Positions 31,701-41,472 of a stretch of DNA of 64,000 nucleotides are shown piece after piece. Numbering within the stretch: the first letter of the stretch is position 1; every line of letters begins with the position of its first letter. The position numbers and the translations under genes are program-made. A model generated the notes under the pieces. It was given only the letters and a program-made list of their open reading frames with translations, had not been told where the DNA came from and made no database searches. Origin of the DNA: Neoconidiobolus thromboides FSU 785 (Eukaryota; Fungi; Entomophthoromycota); contig MU626301.1 of assembly GCA_025603075.1 (NCBI GenBank), positions 1 to 64,000 of the forward strand. Direction: 5' to 3'.

Positions 31701-32378
31701 TTATTCCCTCTTTTCTTTTTTAACCTGAATACCATTCTCCTCTTCTTCTCCCTTTCTTTTGTTTACATTCCTATTATTATCATTATTTAACAATTCCATA
31801 TAGCCATCAACAATTTTAGGATCACATTCTAAAGCTCTTATACAATTTAACTAGAGAAATAAAGTATTATAATAGAAAGAAAGAATTAAAATGGTTAAAA
31901 TATTATATCTATATAAAAAGAAATAAAATAAAAGACTTACCAATAAAATATGCATTTGGTCACATACATTTTCAAAATACTTATAATCTTCTAATATGTT
32001 GCTTATTTTATCGGTTAAAAATTCATCATATTCTTCTTTGGTTAAAGTGCTAAAAGATGATAAATTTATTAATATAAATCCACTTTCTCTTTTTTATAAC
32101 TCCTTATAAAAGAAGTACTTACCCATTCTTATAATTTAAGGTATCTTCCGCTATCTTTGTAGTTAAGTTTATGACATTCTAAATTGATTAATTTTATTAT
32201 GTTATATTAAATCTTAATTGAGTGTTATAAATGTTAAATTTACTTCAAATATAATATTTAACTCTTTAACTTCTTTTAGTAATGGTCCATTAGTTTCCTC
32301 ATTACTTGTATTAGAATCTCCAGAATCAGTATGGTCTAAATCAATAGTTGATAAATCAATATTTGTAATGGAAGACAT
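31701..32378 (-). CDS. Small multi-exon protein, weakly Mediator Med29/Med2-like
   Basis: ATG at 32378, canonical GTAAGT introns, TAA at 31701. The spliced segment KISNILEDYKYFENVCDQMHILLLNCIRALE resembles the Med29 F..xCDQ..L motif. The identity is uncertain. Confidence 0.55.
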
Positions 32379-32499: not shown

Positions 32500-35400
32500 A
32501 TGAAATCAAAAACTAAAAGAAAACAAAAGGACACAAATAAGCCAACAAAAGATACATTTGAACCTAATTTTATCACTCATGGTTCCACAGGCCAATTGAA
32601 TTTTAATATTGATTTATTAGCTAATAAACAAGAAAATGTTATCAATTTAAATTTTAAAAATCAATCAAAAGGTAATTTAAATTGAAATTTAATTCAAATT
32701 TAAATTAATTAAATAAAAGGGAATATTGAATATTACAAGCCAAGCACTGATATAGTAAAACTATATCCCAGTATCCGTCCTAATAAGCCAAGAAGATTTT
32801 TAAAACCGAATAAAAAAGAATTAAAAACTATGGTAATTTAAATTAATTCACTTGATATCTAATGGTTTATATTTTTATTTAGATAAATTCAATACCTTCT
32901 TTAAGAGATGATTTATGTTTTTCAAAAGATTTGATTACCGATTATCTATTAGAAGAAGAAATTAATACTTTCAATAATACATTATTTGACCCAATATTGG
33001 GTAATCAGTTATGTTTATTTACTATTAATAATCATAAATTACTTGCTTTTCCAGATGGTCAATTGGCTTTAGATTTGCGTAGGTAACTTTCATTAATATA
33101 TTATTTATATTATTTATATTATTTATATTATTATAAATAAGCACATAAACTGATATATAATATTCGTACTATTAGGTATAGAACTATTAGATTCCAACTT
33201 AGAAATGAATAAAAAAAAGAAGTCAATAATAGTTTATAAATCAAATACAAGAATCTTACAAATTAATAATCAAAATAATTTAATTTGTATTCGAACAATG
33301 TCTGGATTTATAATAATTGAAATTGATATTATAAAAGATAAAATTATTATAAAAAATAAACAAGAATTTCCAGTACAAGAGAGTATCTTTGATATTAATT
33401 TTAATCCATTAATTCAAGATGAAATTATTACAATGGATAATAAATTAAATATTAAATTATTTGATATTTCATTAGATGATAAAAGGTATTTGAATTATTA
33501 TACTATATTATATTATATTATATTATATTATATTATATTATATTATATTATATTATATCATTATTTTAATTTATTTTATTAATGTATTTATTTCTAGTAA
33601 TCAACTGATTCAATCCCCTTGGGAAAATTATAATGAATTAAATCAAAGCATTCGATCTTTAGGTAATTGTAGAATCATACAAAATCCAAGAACTTTTATA
33701 GTTGGAAATCAAAAATCATTATTTATATTAGATAGTAGAGTAAGTAACTAATATTATTGATATTATTATTAATAACAATGATAATATTATTTTATCTTGT
33801 TAGACTCATTTACCTAAGATGCAAACAATCGAAGTTAAAAAAAGTGATTTATATTATGGATTTGATACACATCAAAATAAATATACAATAGCGACATCCA
33901 ATCAAAATGGATATAGTATATATGATTTAAGATATTTTAAAAAGCAAGTATTTCATTGGAAATATTCAATTAATTCTATTGCTAGACCTAATATTCAATT
34001 TCATTATAAAAATCAATTATTAAGAGATACAGGTAATACTACCATTATTATTAAATCTATTATAACTAATATTAATAATATTACTATATTAGATTGTTTA
34101 AGTACATGGGGTAATTATGGGGACATCAATATTCATCCAATAACATTTGATGATGAAACTATTAATATAACAATGGATCCATTTAGTATTAACAACTACT
34201 ATAAATATAATAGTTATAATGAAGACAACAATAATTTATTAAGTAGTGAATTAAGTTATTACCCAAATAATACATTAGCTCATCAACAATATTGGCAAAA
34301 TCCAACTGTACCTTTCTTAAATGGAGTTTCTTTATTAAGTAAAGAAAACCATAATGATAATAATAAACAAATATTTGAAGTATTTACTTATTTTGAAGAT
34401 GGTAGTATTTATAAAGTTGACTATGAAAAGTATAACGTAGATGAGAGTCATAATGAAACTATTGTTAATAATATTAGTAATGAAATTAATGTGACGGATA
34501 ATTTAACAAATAATGAAATTGAGTTACAGAAAAATGCAATAAATAAAATGGTAAATAACATTCCTTTTGAATATGCCCATACAGTGGATTTAAATCAGTT
34601 TGTGGATGGTAAGTTTAAACTGCTATTTACTAATATTATTATTTACTAATATTATTACTTTTAGAATGTATTGCTGAAAGTTTAAAATTATGTAATATAA
34701 TTAAAGATGAAGACGAAGATGAACAAAATAGGAATTCAAATGGAATATCGAATATAAAATTAAATGGTATAATAAATCCAATTTCAAGGTAAATTATTTG
34801 ATTTATTATAATTTAATGTAATTACTTAATTATTTAATTAGATATGAATTAGATGATGATGATAATAATAATAATATAAACATAACTGAAATTAATACTC
34901 CGCCTACAATAACAACTCAAAATCAAACCATATTGACAACAAAATCTTTATTTACTAATACAACCCCGGATCTGGAATTAACACAATATAAACTCCCTTT
35001 AACTCCTAATCCTTCAATAGACTCTACACAATCACATAATATTAATACATTTACAACCAAATCTACTAATTTGTTATCTACACATTTAAAACAAAGTTTA
35101 ATAACTTATCAAATCGAACCTAATAAATTGACCCAGAATATTAATGAAATTATACAACCTACAGAAACTTATGAAAAATTAGAATTAGTTTGGAATAATA
35201 ACGAAGTTTCAGATGCTACTGATGGAGAAGTTGAAAATGAAGAAGAAGAAGGGAATTATGATAATAGTATAAGAGATGAGGAAGAAAGCGAAGTTAATGT
35301 TGATAATAGAAATAATATATTACCACCTGTTATTAGTTCACAAAAAAATAAAGTTATATCACAAGTAATTAATTCTCAAAAGAAACATTACAATACTAGA

Positions 35401-35598
35401 TTAAGTCAATTTAACAATGAAAATACTAATAACAATTATTCGTCACAAATTAGTGTAGTTGAAAATAGATTTAAAGAACCTACAATGACTCAACCATTAC
35501 CTTATTTATCTCAATTAAAATTAGAGCCAATGTCTAATTCTCAGCCGTTATCAAGAGCAACAACAATACGTAAAAAAGTTCGGAAATCTGGATTTTAA
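32500..35598 (+). CDS. RRN6: RNA polymerase I core factor subunit Rrn6/TAF1C-like, multi-exon
   Basis: Beta-propeller-like exons (IFDINFNP, LYILDSR, YSIYDLRY) followed by an S/Q-rich tail ending ..SQPLS..RKKVRKSGF*, as typical of fungal Rrn6 C-termini. Confidence 0.65.
33504..33558. repeat. (TATAT)n microsatellite in an intron
   Basis: About 11 tandem TATAT units. A similar tract lies at about 7328-7370 in a GUP1 intron. Confidence 0.9.
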
Positions 35599-35817: not shown

Positions 35818-36408
35818 TTATGGTAATTTTAAAAATTGGATTTCTATATGAATACTAGAAACATTCCTTACTCTTGTTTCAATATCTTCTTCCTAAATAA
35901 TAATAATAAGTTTAATAATCATGTAATCTTAGACTAAAAATAAATCCTTTACCTCATCTTCAGGTGTTAAATCTTCAATCACCTTTGTTGTATCTGTAGT
36001 AATTTTTAATTGTGGTTTAAATTCTTCAAATTGGGTTTCTAGCATTAAGGCCAACTGAACTGTATTTAAAGTACAAGAACCAAGACCATGTAAAGATAAT
36101 TTTGGTAATCTATTTATAATTAAAATAAAATAAAATGAAATCAATAGAAACAAAAACAAAAATAATATTAAATATCATAAATACTATTTACCTTTTTTCA
36201 ATTAATCCTTTTTTAACTTGTAAATATAAATACTTCAACTTAGTTTTTTTTGTAATATAAATATCCTCTAAAGTTTGACTTGGCTTTACGGGTAATCGAC
36301 TATTGATTTCAAGGATTCCAGAGGGCTAACTCTATTAGCAAACTTTTCAAGTTTTTTAAAATATCAATTTACTTTCTGTTTTCTCGGTATTACTTGTTGT
36401 TTTGGCAT
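35818..36408 (-). CDS. POP7: RNase P/MRP subunit Pop7/Rpp20 (Alba fold), multi-exon
   Basis: Spliced product MPKQQ...SRLPVKP...LSLHGLGSCTLNTVQLAL...TTDTTKVIEDLTPEDE...RVRNVSSIHIEI matches Rpp20 (IYIHGLG.AI..AI.IAL; TSTVELVDELEPE; RNNSAIHI). Confidence 0.85.
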
Positions 36409-37037
36409 TTGACTTTGTTATGAAGTTAAAAATGTAATGTTTGGAGATTTTAAAGTGGGATTAAATTAATTGAAATACAAAATCTATTTAAATCAATAAA
36501 TCGAATTTATTTTAAAAAAAGAGTAAATTAAATAGAAATTTTAAGAAATAATATACTTTAATTAGAATTTTTTTATATAAAATTAATTATAGTACCAGCT
36601 TAATAAAAGCATTTAATTATCTCATAAATAAATCTAATTCTTAGTTGAAATTTCACTACAATTTTTAAAAATAGATTAAAACTAAAGTCTAAAAGATAAG
36701 AAGATTAAATGATTAAAAGAATGTTTTAAGTTATTTACCTTTTATCTCTATTAAAAAGTGATTCTAATTTAATGAGCTCAACAATTGAAAGAAAAGGTAT
36801 TTAAGATTAGTGATACTTAAATAACTGAAGCATTAAAAATTTATTTTTATTTTATAAAAAATCAATACGTAACTCTAAAGCTATCACTATTTAAAGCTCA
36901 AAAAAATTAATAATTGAAGTATTTATTATTCTCTTTTTTAAAATAAATGATATCAATAATAATAAAAGATGAAAGCAAAAGAAGAAACACAATATCAATT
37001 TTTATTATATAAAAATAAACAGGTGATAATTCATAAT

Positions 37038-40000
37038 ATGGTTAGTTGTAAGCTTTCTTTTTTTTGAATGTAATAGAATAAATAGAATTAATCTATTGTT
37101 TTTTTTAGTTCGTGTTGAAAATGCTGTAGGTATAATTGATGTCGTTAAGGTTTGGAAAAGGGAATTTATCAGTAGTAAATTAAATTATTTTGATAAAATT
37201 GTAATTTTATTATAAATGTTGATTATAGACGGTTCAAAAAATAATGATATTTTTCTTAAGTTGTGTAATGCTATATTTAAACATTCAAATGAGAGTATGA
37301 AAGTTTATCAGAAGTATTTTGAAAAGATAAAATTAAAATTAGAATTAAGATTAAAAGGAAATTTATATAGTAGATTTTATCAGAAGCTTTTAAAATGAAA
37401 GTTCAGTAAGTTCTTTGGAATTTTAATCTAACTTTAGTTGGTCTATCAAAGTGTATATAAAGTTAGTTATGAAATAGTGGAGGACTTAAAGGGATTTAAT
37501 AAAATGGAGATGCAAAAATGTATTTATTTTATTGGAGATAATTAAGTTAATAAAGAATATTTGAATTCGTTTAGTATAATTAGTCTATTTCGTGTTATTG
37601 GTAATAGTTTTTATTTAATGATATAAATATATCAATAATATGTTAGAATCTTATATTGAACCAAGAAAAAATAAACAGTTAGAATTCACTAATGCAATAA
37701 ATTAAAAATAAATTAAGTTAACAACAAATTTAATAGCTAATGTTCAATAGATGCTTTTATGGAGAGGATATGATATCAAGAATAAATCAAATTTAAAGGT
37801 AAGTAAACTTAGAGATAGTACTAATATTAATGAACAAACTCATAAGATCGCTATTTTAGAAAAACAAACGACTAACTTTACTAAAGTAATATTTATTTTA
37901 TTTTTATTTAATATTGTAATTTTGAAGGTAGATAGAAAGTAAGGACTTATTTATAATCGTATAAATATTATTATACCAGTGTAGGATAGAAATCCCTAAA
38001 ACTCCTATTAATTTATATGAAGGTAGTAACAATTTATAATATTCATTTACATGATTAACAATAAATAAATAGATGCACTTATAGCAAATACAACTAACAA
38101 ACACAATTGAATTTGATATTATTAATACTAGATCATTAGATGAATATCATAAAAGTGATTTTATTGTTTATTTTATTTAAAATTATAATTATAGCTATTT
38201 ACGTGGTATTGAAGATGATCGAGGTTGGAAAACAGTCAATAACATTAATCCTTAAGAATAAGATCTCTTTGAGTTAGCTTGGAATGAAACTCCAACAAAC
38301 AATAAAACAAACATTGGTAATAGTTTTCAACCTGGTGACAATGGTAAACAATCATAATGGCAATAAGTAATATAATATTTATTTAATAAATAGTTTAAAA
38401 CCATGGAACATTTCAAAAGATGAGTTTGTTGATCCTAAAAATAGTTATAATTCTCTAAATGATCAGAGGGAAAATAAGTGAAATCCTTTTGATTCAAGTA
38501 ATAAATCTAATGTTAGGTTAGAACCTCAAGCCGATGAACTTAAATTAACAAATTAGAATAGTTGAAATCAACGAAAAAGGACTAGTTTTCATTAAGACAA
38601 TGATTAAAGTGCATGGTATAATAACAATCAAAGAAATCGAGGAGCCTAGAGTAAGAATAGTTGAAATAATCAAAAGACTCAGGGCAATAATATTACTCAA
38701 AAAAATCAAGGGAATTGAGGTGATATTAATATTCAAGGAAGCCAAACGAATTAAGTAACAATATCCGAACTGGGAATCAAGACATTCAGTGAAATTGGAG
38801 GAATAGTCATCAGGCTGAGAATCATGACACCCAAGGAAGTTTAGGCAACAGTAAACAAGGAAATTGTGGTAGTTATAAGTCTCATAATCAAATTGACCAA
38901 GGAAATTGAGATAGCACTCATTTTCAAAGCCAAACTAACCAAGATACTTGGAGTAGTAACGCCTAAACTGGAAACAATAATCAGCAGGGAAGTTAGGGAT
39001 CTAAACCCAAAGGTGGAAATACTTGAAGTAACGATAGTCAAATTTCCTATCAAAATGATACTCAAAACCAAACAAATGCTGATACCAATTTTAAACCAAG
39101 AGATGTCCAAGACAATCAAATAAGATGGAATGATAATCAAAGCCCTGATTAACCTGAAGAGGTAATAACCCAAATTTTAAGTCAGGCAGTGCCCAAAGTA
39201 ATCAAGGAACTTAGAATAATAATGATTCGCACCAAAATCAAAGAGACAGCAATCCCAATTCTAGCCTAAGGGGCAATACCTGAGGTAATTATAGAGGAAA
39301 TAGAGGAATAAATAGTAAAAGAAGGGGCGACTATAATCGTAGTTTCAATGATCAAGGTAATAATACTGAGGAATGGGGTGATAAGCCTAGATCAAAGATA
39401 GATTGGAGCAGAAGTTTGAACGTAGCAGGAAGTAGTTAAAACATTAACAAAACCAATCTACAAGGCTGGGGTAATAGTCAATCGAATCCAGTAACTAAAA
39501 TCAAAATAGAGAGTAATTGAGCTAAGAGTGATAGTAAAATATGAAACGACATAGGAGACTGGGGTAATGATTAACTGAATACAAGCAAGCAGGATGGTAA
39601 TTGAACTAGTAACGTCAAGTTTGAAAAAATGGAAATTTAACAAAGCAACTAGACTAATAATAATAATGCTACAGCGAACACCCAAAGAGATAACTGGACT
39701 AATAGCAATCAGTCTGAAAAGGAGAATACTTAAGGAGGTAATTGGACCTGTAATAGTTAACCTGTAAGAGTGGATACCCAGTGAAGAAATTGGGCTGATA
39801 ATCCTGAGCCCAAAAAAGTGGACACTTAAAAAGACAACCAGTCTGACAATTTTCAATCTAAAAGAATAAATTCTTGCGAAGATAATTGGTTTAATAATAA
39901 TAATGTTATCGCAGATACTGTATTAGAAGATTGGACTTCAAGGGTTAAAATAGAAAAACGATCTAATAATGAGCAGTCCGGGCAACCAAGTACTCAAAAA

Positions 40001-40520
40001 AGTAATTGGAATAACAAAAATATTATTTCAAATACTGTACAAGGAGATTGGGCTCTAAAAGTCAAAAAGGAAAAGTGGATAGTACTGAACAACTCAAGAA
40101 AAAAGATACAAAAGCAGATAATTGAGGTAATATTATTATTATTATTATTGAAAGTACTAGAGGAAATTGGACTTCAAAAGCAAAAATGGAAAAGGCTGAT
40201 AACTAAAAACAACTCAAGGAAGAAAATATGTAAGCAAATAGTTATAATAAAAATACTAATATTACAGAGACTGTATAAAGTTCATGGACCTCAAAAGTTA
40301 ATTAACCTAAAAAACTAAATGCTGGACAAAGTAGAAATAACGATATTAATACTACGGAAACTACTAAAGGATTATGGACCTCAAAAGTCAAGAAAGAACG
40401 AAGGTGGTATGGTGACCTGGAGAGTAATATTACTATAAATATGAAATCTATAGAAAGCTTGAATATGGATGATTTGGATGATAATGATGATATCTTAGAA
40501 CTAGATTTAAATTGCTGAAA
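37038..40520 (+). pseudogene. Decayed gene with a globular N-terminus and a long N/Q/S-rich Trp-repeat (WG/NW, Ago-hook-like) tail
   Basis: ATG at 37038, then a canonical intron 37048-37108 and in-frame continuation into ORF 37216. From about 38200 the frame reads DRGWK, PWN, GN*G, GS*G, EEWGDK, QGWGN, GDWGN, GGNWT, RNWAD plus an RG-rich patch, with many stops and frameshifts near 38755, 39156 and 40075. Confidence 0.75.
39890..40420 (+). repeat. Five imperfect coding tandem repeats of about 117 bp (39 aa)
   Basis: The core TGGAC(T/C)TCAA / W-T-S-K-V has its Trp codons at 39932, 40049, 40168, 40285 and 40375 (spacings 117, 119, 117, 90). Confidence 0.8.
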
Positions 40521-40682
40521 TTTATTCTTAGATGAAAGGTATTCTAGAAAAATAAAAATGATAATGATCAAAATAGTGGGAAAAAGGACAAAGATTTGAA
40601 AAACAAAAGAGGATCTCGAGAGCAGTGAGGCAATGATTATCAGGATGGGGAAGATAATTGATCAATCGAGATTTTAAGTTAG

Positions 40683-40797
40683 TATGGGGATATGTTTTTT
40701 TGTTTAAGAATTTTACCAACAATTTTTCTATTTTTAAGCGCTGTTTGAACAGAAAAATTGTTGGTAAAATTCTTAAACATAAAAATACATCCCCATA
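40683..40797. mobile_element. MITE family A palindromic (fold-back) derivative
   Basis: 47-bp arms 40683-40729 and 40751-40797 are inverted repeats around the family's central AAGCGCT segment. Confidence 0.9.
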
Positions 40798-41472
40798 TAT
40801 TATTATATTTTAGTGTTTGAAAAATATAATAGAATATTAAGTTGCTTTTTATACCATTCTATTATTATTTGATAGTAAATTATTTATTAAATTAAAAGGG
40901 TAATATAAAGTTTGATTTCAATATATATAATTTTATTATTATTATAAATAAGGAATGCTCTTTTTAACTCAATGGAGTAAGTCATTAGTAGCAATCATAG
41001 TCATTTTAAAAAGAACCTATTAAGAACTGTTATTTCCTTTTTCTATAAGTTACATACTCTTGACTTTTACTAATTCTATCGCTTTAAACCTTAATTTATC
41101 TCTTAAGTTTCTTAATTTTAATACTTGGCATTACTTAGTTTAAAATTTTAAAAATAAATATTGTATGTTTTGATTTCAAAATATTACACAATATAAAACA
41201 TGTAACACCTTGTTATCCAAAAAGCAACTTATTCTAATCAAGAAATTCCATAAATTTATGTTAAGTTTATACGATTAAACTTATTTAAAATCTATAAAGT
41301 ACCTACTCTGATTAGTTATAAAATATAAATAGTATTCATCTAATAATATATAATATAATAAGTATTATAATAATAAATAATAATACAATTATAACAAGTG
41401 AAAAATTAAGTAATAATAATATAAGTTTACTTTATACAAAGATTTATTAAACAGATAATAAAATAGATTAAA

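Follow-up and report, generated by a model that had tools for sequence, protein, structure and literature searches.

The locus at 37038-40518 on the forward strand of the window (the whole stretch of Neoconidiobolus thromboides FSU 785 DNA analysed here, the first 64 kb of contig MU626301.1) was a spliced protein-coding gene. Its present state is best explained as that of a transcribed, long-dead unitary pseudogene decaying by ordinary mutation, a reading to which we give a probability of about 80%. As in other unitary (non-processed) pseudogenes, introns are kept, disabling mutations have accumulated and the variants among strains are neutral. Judged from searches with its stop-free pieces, the gene appears to be without detectable relatives. 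The first-pass annotation of this DNA had described a fossil gene at this place, and we indeed found a real spliced coding gene which is now full of stops.

Structure and transcription of the former gene

RNA contigs of the public run X3 revealed forward-strand splicing at GT..AG ends, with four introns bridged by contigs and a fifth, intron 3, inferred (table 1). The start codon and canonical first intron proposed earlier were confirmed, the latter being skipped in the RNA contigs. On the other hand, the picture of a gene with only this intron has to be replaced by one with five introns and four, perhaps five, -1 frameshifts. A thin unspliced contig covers 37769-37885, overlapping inferred intron 3. 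The upstream intergenic bin 36600-36746 has zero coverage in X3 and X6 and is covered by the DNA runs. Thus, promoter and splice sites still work and yield a spliced RNA of about 3.4 kb. The locus is single-copy by depth in the DNA runs and is present in all four sampled strains. Its neighbours on the two sides are the Rpp20 and fatty-acid 2-hydroxylase genes.

The long open reading frames in this region are hydrophobic shadow ORFs only, as the first-pass annotation had stated, and the true frame is recognized by its shortage of stops. In the N-terminal part a single frame emerges only after splicing; it carries 14 stops, compared with 35.4 +/- 5.7 in shuffled sequences (lowest shuffle 17), and the remaining two frames contain 32 and 56. 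The tail has 34 stop codons, the terminal TGA included, where 60 +/- 7 would be expected. The tail is about 700-750 codons long, in agreement with the earlier estimate. The locus had also been called unannotated, which does not hold for 39666-40518, a segment covered by a GenBank model of 184 amino acids. This model (K502DRAFT_348220) joins parts of the true frame to parts of shadow frames, and we flag it as wrong.

Table 1. Features of the former gene and its surroundings (positions in the window)
Feature	Positions	Strand	Evidence
Exon 1, comprising the 5' leader and the ATG (37038-37040)	36996-37047	+	X3 RNA contig, 52 letters upstream of the 37047/37109 joint
Intron 1, 61 nt, GT..AG (GTAAGC..TAG)	37048-37108	+	Joint 37047>37109 in a spliced X3 contig; ends checked
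Exon 2; earliest in-frame stop TAA 37213-37215 (codon 39)	37109-37600	+	
Intron 2, 46 nt, GT..AG	37601-37646	+	X3 joint 37599>37646, cut +1
Exon 3	37647-37798	+	X3 record 1
Intron 3 (inferred), 137 nt, GTAAGT..AG	37799-37935	+	X3 contigs end at 37798 and start at 37936, no bridging contig; frame runs on
Exon 4	37936-38022	+	X3 record 3
Intron 4, 50 nt, GT..AG	38023-38072	+	X3 joint 38020>38071, cut +2
Exon 5, last part of the N-terminal region; 337 codons from the ATG form a single frame with 14 stops	38073-38343	+	
Intron 5, 50 nt, GT..AG; frame shifts -1 at the junction	38344-38393	+	X3 record 3, pieces 38071-38342 and 38393-40716
Exon 6	38394-40716	+	X3 record 3, colinear with the genome, no differences, no gaps
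Ex-coding tail, 703 codons and TGA; polar, Asn-rich	38395-40518	+	
Zone of -1 frame change no. 2	38752-38765	+	Frame comparison
Zone of -1 frame change no. 3	39150-39165	+	Frame comparison
RG-rich patch	39266-39345	+	Translation
GenBank model K502DRAFT_348220, 184-aa hypothetical protein; true and shadow frames mixed	39666-40518	+	
Degenerate tandem repeat, unit about 117 nt (39 aa); five units well defined (from 39893 on), a sixth poorly aligned (39776-39892)	39776-40440	+	
Frame change no. 4: A5 run, 1-nt deletion in this strain only (X4, X5 and X6 carry one A more)	40066-40070	+	
TGA after ..ILELDLNC, taken as the original stop; GenBank model also ends here	40516-40518	+	
Possible ex-coding continuation in another frame, similar in flavour, two TGA at Trp-like places, TAG end just before the MITE	40548-40679	+	Translation
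High-copy palindromic MITE at the transcript 3' end, outside the gene	40683-40800	.	Thousands-fold excess depth in every run; numerous copies in the window

Disabling mutations and strain variation

The disabling load amounts to 47 in-frame stops and four, perhaps five, -1 frameshifts over about 1040 codons. With a stop after 38 residues, 46 further stops and these frameshifts, a full-length protein is impossible, and the RNA is presumably degraded by nonsense-mediated decay. The stops probably arose by ordinary A/T-biased point mutation in a sequence with many codons that a single change turns into a stop: TGG gave TGA or TAG and then TAA; CAA, AAA and GAA gave TAA.

The gene had been thought to have died recently. 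This does not agree with the number of stops and frameshifts, with the loss of about half of the Trp codons, or with the comparison of strains. In the list of variants for the three other sampled strains, which are 0.3-0.8% divergent, no more than four codons involve a stop. These are 39520 (TGA here, TGG in X6), 39127 (TGG here, TAG in X4/X5), 38753 (TAA here, TGA in X6) and 39926 (GAA here, TAA in X5). The remaining stops appear common to all sampled strains. The variants include 11 synonymous and 19 non-synonymous changes, with 31% synonymous expected under neutrality. Stops appear and vanish singly among strains, which is a neutral pattern, and their polymorphism indicates that decay is ongoing in each strain.

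The locus resembles transcribed unitary pseudogenes in its retained spliced introns, active promoter, many nonsense and frameshift mutations, neutral polymorphism and lack of an intact copy. It differs from others in that its parent has no known relatives and its ratio of stops to frameshifts is unusually high, the latter because the sequence is rich in Trp/Gln codons and the genome is strongly AT-biased. A pattern of stops confined to Trp and Gln places is what GC-to-AT mutation is expected to leave in such an AT-rich genome, and it signals neither recoding nor a special process.

Nevertheless, so high a ratio leaves room for a burst of base substitutions, and a first alternative is that hypermutation (either RIP-like C-to-T change in a duplicate or deamination of methylated cytosines) killed the gene, instead of slow neutral decay. 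Many stops beside few frameshifts and wholly intact splice sites would be consistent with such an event, as would TGA and TAG at Trp places and some TAA at Gln places, all of which correspond to G-to-A or C-to-T changes; RIP-like indices have also been reported for some Entomophthorales. However, the RIP indices of the locus (TA/AT 0.98 and (CA+TG)/(AC+GT) 1.11) fall within the range of intact neighbours, and the commonest change, TGG to TGA, lies outside the CpA context. In the repeat array of the tail, three of the four TAA codons align with AAA or GAA (Lys/Glu) of other units, which makes them transversions, and the fourth aligns with Gln. In addition, single stops are still arising in separate strains, and the single-copy locus has no second copy or paralogue within the 64-kb window. 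We consider a burst unlikely.

Slow decay of a dead gene also has to be compared with the possibility that the spliced RNA itself has a role, as a long non-coding RNA derived from a pseudogene, and is retained for it. The GT..AG ends of all five introns are intact despite heavy G and C loss elsewhere, which is somewhat unexpected under pure neutral decay, and the RNA could be under selection. The RNA is still made and accurately spliced even though roughly one in four, or more, of the G positions in Trp codons have mutated, and the locus has been retained in every sampled strain. But persistent transcription of dead genes is common, the strain variants look neutral, another strain has freely accumulated indels in its promoter and intron 1, and a search of the window for conserved RNA families detected only one tRNA. 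A functional RNA is thus an improbable explanation, more so than a burst.

We give almost no credence to a living gene in which the stops would count as sense codons, owing to an altered code, to suppressor tRNAs or to RNA editing at certain stages, as might be imagined from the TGA and TAG codons at Trp-type places: neighbouring genes use the standard code, the RNA contigs carry no changed letters, four or five frameshifts remain, TAA occupies Lys and Glu places (and one Gln place) in the repeat array, and new stops and a new frameshift occur in single strains among otherwise neutral variants. Two versions were rejected specifically. A ciliate-like code (TAA/TAG as Gln, TGA as Trp) was rejected, as neighbouring conserved genes are clean in the standard code, with uninterrupted ORFs of 250-881 amino acids, and the frameshifts would persist. 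A-to-I editing turns UGA and UAG into UGG in some ascomycetes; rescue of the stops by such editing was rejected in view of the frameshifts, the TAA codons at Lys/Glu places and the unchanged contigs, which are assemblies from a single run in which rare edited molecules and expression level are invisible.

Search for relatives

Only stop-free pieces of 26-184 residues served as queries for homology searches, which could have overlooked an orthologue that is intact but diverged, or an N-terminal fold that is already known. Ten pieces gave no match in Pfam at E up to 10, including UBA, RRM, PAM2 or other domains of silencing proteins, and three N-terminal pieces gave chance matches or nothing in a sequence search of the PDB. 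In a representative set of 1.84 billion proteins, the sole match of a 60-residue N-terminal piece was a 2418-residue junk repeat protein with 38 weak stretches, which we regard as spurious. The same applies to the result of a metagenome scan, a single 21-residue Lys-rich match that does not extend. One N-terminal and one tail piece gave look-alike scores of at most 0.83, or none, in the ESM Atlas. A word search with a 162-residue stop-free stretch and the 184-residue GenBank model returned only K502DRAFT_348220 itself. By eye, the N-terminal domain was considered to be Est1/SMG7-like and later ENTH/ANTH-like; no tool supported either assignment, and both serve as leads only.

Composition of the tail and possible former function

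The tail contains 38 Trp-type sites (20 TGG, 13 TGA and 5 TAG), besides 15 TAA codons. With TGA and TAG counted, Trp makes up 5.4% of the tail, compared with 0.96% in a set of 12 intact ORFs from the window; mutation has already struck about half of the Trp codons. Successive sites are 10-20 residues apart (median 16, coefficient of variation 0.53) and flanked by small and polar residues. TGA and TAG occupy contexts like those of intact Trp, and in the alignment of the repeat units, whose core reads ..TV..[DNS]-W-T-S-K-V-K.EK, TGG and TGA fall in one column. The tail further contains Asn (17.8%), Ser (10.4%), Lys (8.1%), Asp (7.7%), Gln (7.1%), Gly (5.8%) and Ile (4.8%), and its scarce residues include Cys (0.6%), Phe (1.4%), His (0.9%), Met (0.7%) and Tyr (1.1%).

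The individual motifs listed by the first-pass annotation could all be located. The intact Trp codons are placed exactly (TGG at 39374 in EEWGD, 39467 in QGWGN and 39560 in GDWGN), the eroded sites GN-stop-G, GS-stop-G, GSLG and GNCG are present, and so is the RG patch. Its description of the tail as a WG/NW repeat needs correction as to the neighbours of Trp. The majority of sites are NW, DW, SW or TW, with Asn preceding 14 of the 38 (P = 0.004), whereas WG or GW occurs at only 7 of them, 3 intact and 4 eroded (18%, vs 11% expected from composition).

The ancestral protein probably began with a helical domain of about 270 residues. The tail behind it, some 750 residues long, was polar and probably disordered, and consisted partly of repeats of 31-39 residues, with a Trp about every 16 residues between small polar ones. 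Our best guess, to which we would give even odds, is that it was a multivalent scaffold whose evenly spaced Trp residues docked in hydrophobic pockets of partner proteins or drove the formation of condensates. Argonaute would be one possible partner of several, others being CCR4-NOT and clathrin/AP-2 adaptors.

The narrower reading proposed earlier is that the gene is the relic of a lineage-specific RNA-silencing scaffold, recently dead, whose WG/GW tail bound Argonaute in the manner of GW182, Tas3 and NRPE1. Such WG/GW domains are rich in Gly, Ser and Trp, then in Asn, Asp and Glu, and poor in Cys, Phe, His, Met and Tyr (PMC2910046). The enrichment of Trp, Ser, Asn and Asp in the tail and its low content of Cys, Phe, His, Met and Tyr agree with this composition. 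The frequency, spacing and small polar flanks of Trp also speak for the reading, and Entomophthorales including N. thromboides are reported to keep an Argonaute (bioRxiv 10.1101/2023.09.13.557621). However, Gly ranks among the two highest-scoring residues in WG/GW domains (PMC2910046), and here it is neither frequent in the tail nor, at most sites, in contact with Trp. Moreover, none of the stop-free pieces searched has a Pfam domain or a relative of any silencing protein, and the age of the decay contradicts the recent death. The long disordered polar region with many spaced Trp among small residues is shared with GW182/TNRC6, Schizosaccharomyces pombe Tas3 and plant NRPE1 and SPT5L. Unlike in these proteins, the tail is not Gly-rich and has mostly NW or DW in place of GW/WG; no UBA, RRM, PAM2, KOW or polymerase domain and no sequence relation turned up in the pieces searched, and the gene is dead. 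The Argonaute-hook reading is only weakly suggested, and as a whole we consider it unlikely, to about the same degree as a burst.

A related possibility, which we consider a little more doubtful still, is that the locus is the relic of a W-motif scaffold of the Conidiobolus lineage, which would have worked like GW182, recruiting Argonaute and/or CCR4-NOT by spaced Trp in a disordered tail, and which N. thromboides would have lost at about the time when it lost UHRF1 and DNMT1, its genes for 5mC maintenance. We know of no Argonaute hook in early-diverging fungi.

Another candidate for the ancestor is an endocytic clathrin adaptor of the ENTH/ANTH type (epsin or AP180-like), in which the Trp motifs, one NPF and ILELDL would be adaptor- or clathrin-binding motifs. 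By eye, a helix of the form K-x-[IV]-x-L-L-x-x-L-I-x-x-G-S near residues 35-50, split by the first stop, is reminiscent of such proteins. So is the general layout of Epsin/AP180 adaptors: a helical N-terminal domain, then an extended tail that carries motifs and ends in an acidic stretch rich in Leu (L-x-L-D here). In contrast to these adaptors, no piece matched ENTH, ANTH or VHS in Pfam (E up to 10), the PDB or the 1.84-billion-protein search, DPW motifs number zero and NPF occurs once. In addition, such domains have their lipid-binding site within the N-terminal 40-60 residues, a part that the present protein would lack. We regard this ancestry as very doubtful, more so than the Argonaute readings.

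As it stands, the locus is one more transcribed pseudogene and of little importance. Should an orthologue have survived intact in a sister species, the Trp-studded tail of that protein would make an inexpensive test case for scaffolds based on W motifs in early-diverging fungi. Prion-like sticker-and-spacer domains of the FUS and hnRNPA1 type may be comparable: the tail likewise has evenly spaced aromatic residues within a spacer rich in Asn, Ser and Gln; it would differ from them in that the sticker is Trp, not Tyr or Phe, and in its abundant Lys and Asp.

Former coding frame and transcript

The locus (window 37038-40518, + strand) is the unitary pseudogene of an orphan gene, dead for a long time but transcribed and spliced. 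That it was formerly a coding gene can be seen from its reading frame. Once five introns are removed, the first 337 codons lie in one frame only, which contains 14 stops versus 32 and 56 in the other two frames; shuffles of this N-terminal part gave 35.4 +/- 5.7 stops with a minimum of 17. The frame of the Trp-studded tail has 34 stop codons including the terminal TGA (60 +/- 7 in shuffles) and, as in coding sequence, its codons have a purine-first periodicity. The best frame path is 1041 codons long and is interrupted by 47 internal stops (24 TAA, 9 TAG and 14 TGA), the earliest at codon 39, and by four frame changes, every one -1.

The first-pass annotation had described a fossil gene overlaid by hydrophobic shadow ORFs, and both were confirmed. 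Its ATG at 37038 and first intron are present, as are intact WG motifs at 39374, 39467 and 39560, eroded GN*G, GS*G, GSLG and GNCG sites and an RG patch (near 39266-39345). Coding sequence may once have extended beyond the presumed stop at 40518, possibly with a fifth frame change after it: in 40548-40679, another frame keeps the K/N/D/G-rich style of the tail, with two TGA at Trp-like places, and the frame continuing past 40518 ends at a TAG (40677) three bases before a MITE.

Splicing was followed in the contigs of run X3, whose organism label is identical to that of the probable source sample. The upstream intergenic bin 36600-36746 is left uncovered by these contigs and by X6 but is covered in the DNA runs, which identifies X3 as RNA and the locus as transcribed and spliced. 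In the last exon, from 38393/38394 to at least 40716, an RNA contig runs colinear with the genome and has 0 differing letters. In another strain, X4, two versions of 36725-37204 (promoter, exon 1 and intron 1) occur at equal depth. One is near-identical, and the other differs at 55 letters and has 14 gaps; the pair suggests that this isolate contains two haplotypes or nuclei.

Features of the pseudogene, variants in three other strains (X4, X5, X6) and neighbouring genes (window coordinates)
Feature	Position	Strand	Description
Intron 1	37048-37108	+	GT..AG, bridged by X3 contigs
Intron 2	37601-37646	+	GT..AG, bridged by X3 contigs
Intron 3	37799-37935	+	Inferred: contig ends right before GTAAGT, next starts right after AG
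Intron 4	38023-38072	+	GT..AG, bridged by X3 contigs
Intron 5	38344-38393	+	GT..AG, bridged by X3 contigs
Frame change 1	Intron-5 junction	+	-1
Frame change 2	Near 38757	+	-1
Frame change 3	Near 39159	+	-1
Frame change 4	A-run 40066-40070	+	-1
Variant	38753		TAA; TGA in X6
Variant	39127		TGG; TAG in X4/X5
Variant	39520		TGA; TGG in X6
Variant	39926		GAA; TAA in X5
Variant	40066-40070		A-run shorter by one; one extra A in X4, X5, X6
Neighbour	31701-32378	-	GenBank call, 149-aa protein without family
Neighbour	33819-35598	+	GenBank call, 536-aa Asn-rich protein without Pfam family
Neighbour	35818-36408	-	GenBank call, Rpp20 (RNase P/MRP subunit); shares a 630-bp upstream region with the pseudogene

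Origin of the stops and age of the decay

The genome of Neoconidiobolus thromboides is very AT-rich, with ~20-22% GC in intergenic regions versus 29-40% in the intact ORFs measured. Comparison of sites within the pseudogene revealed that TGA and TAG occupy the same contexts (GN-G, NS-N, NT-G) as intact Trp (GNWT, DNWT, GDWG), and that the left neighbour of Trp-type sites (TGG, TGA and TAG in the tail) is Asn in 14 of 38 cases (P = 0.004). Within a single column of the repeat array, TGG in one unit is followed by TGA in the adjacent one. One repeat TAA is aligned with CAA and three with AAA or GAA, indicating that transversions are part of the mutation spectrum. RIP indices of the locus (TA/AT 0.98, (CA+TG)/(AC+GT) 1.11) are inside the range of intact neighbours; some Entomophthorales have been reported, with caveats, to show RIP-like indices (10.1101/2023.09.13.557621).

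Considering the Trp contexts, the repeat alignment and the ordinary RIP indices, the stops at Trp and Gln places show the pattern that ordinary GC-to-AT-biased mutation produces in a Trp/Gln/Lys-rich sequence. As a rough estimate from one-step precursors with transition-biased weights, ~40% of new stops would come from TGG and ~40% from CAA, CAG and CGA. Such mutation would account for the Trp/Gln pattern of stops seen in this genome. A burst of base substitutions that killed the gene is a minor alternative, to which the high stop-to-frameshift ratio and the intact splice sites lend some weight. A ciliate-type code, which TAA/TAG in Gln-like positions and TGA in Trp-like ones might suggest, is ruled out: the conserved neighbour genes are uninterrupted ORFs (up to 881 residues) in the standard code, which is thus the code of the genome.

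The gene had been thought to have died recently, which is not the case. Contigs of X4, X5 and X6 (DNA or RNA) are 0.3-0.8% divergent from the locus. Only four of the variants listed affect a stop codon (73 further variants lie beyond the list), and thus the remaining stops appear, among the variants listed, to be common to the four strains. In the former coding frame, 11 of 30 variants listed are synonymous, versus 31% predicted under neutrality (P = 0.30). These results indicate that the gene was dead long before the strains separated and that it drifts neutrally. Decay is still in progress in the strains. Third codon positions of intact genes are already at the intergenic GC level and therefore cannot date the decay.

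The ancestral protein and its relatives

The tail (703 codons, window 38395-40518) is rich in polar residues (N 17.8, S 10.4, K 8.1, D 7.7, Q 7.1, T 6.8 and G 5.8%), and its final third consists of a degenerate tandem repeat with a unit of 117 nt (39 residues). Its 38 Trp-type sites (5.4%; in 12 intact ORFs of the window, Trp makes up 0.96%) are spaced more evenly than random (median 16, CV 0.53), and Gly adjoins only 7 of them. In WG/GW Argonaute-binding domains, W and G are top-scoring, followed by N, S, A and D, and L, I, M, Y and C are poorly represented (PMC2910046). The tail resembles these domains in its W, S, N and D enrichment and in the same scarce residues, but differs in Gly and in the share of WG/GW pairs. 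The Argonaute hook proposed in the first-pass annotation appears to be a weak analogy. Trp short linear motifs are bound by Argonaute, CCR4-NOT and clathrin-adaptor appendages, and the small polar flanks in the tail seem to fit this general class. By eye, the N-terminal part may resemble Est1/SMG7 or ENTH/ANTH, but no search with its pieces supported either likeness.

Relatives were sought with stop-free pieces only (26-184 residues). Ten pieces had no match in Pfam, three had no relative among PDB sequences, and no relative was found in the ESM Atlas. Among 1.84 billion representatives, a 60-residue N-terminal piece had no relative, its sole match being a junk repeat protein; a metagenome scan likewise gave no relative, with one spurious 21-residue match. 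Two word searches returned nothing except the GenBank model P0002. Because word search is blind to proteins longer than 1.75 times the query, only the one representative search could have detected an intact orthologue of ~1000 residues.

In X4 and X5, a contig at single-copy depth joins 39562-like to 37883-like letters, separated by 34 unrelated ones. Its source may be a different locus that shares a short similarity and might be a relative of the gene. Summed contig depth in these DNA runs is 4-9x single-copy at 37335-37481 and 37776-37922, no second copy of which occurs in the window; AT-rich sequence at other genomic places, matching in part, may account for the excess.

GenBank model and adjoining MITE

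The window corresponds to the first 64 kb of contig MU626301.1 (assembly GCA_025603075.1). GenBank sequence around the fatty-acid 2-hydroxylase gene next to the locus matches window 31473-52552 exactly, as its reverse complement. The only database protein encoded within the pseudogene is K502DRAFT_348220 (P0002, 184 aa, window 39666-40518), named hypothetical protein and assigned to Neoconidiobolus thromboides FSU 785. This model begins in a shadow frame, continues across the strain-specific frameshift to a second stretch in a shadow frame and bypasses stops by means of invented introns, mixing true-frame and shadow-frame pieces. It is a gene-prediction artefact built on the pseudogene, and is corrected by the present analysis.

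The transcript contig ends at a palindromic MITE (40683-40800), which has at least 10 further copies in the window and, in each of the four runs, a depth thousands of times that of single-copy sequence.
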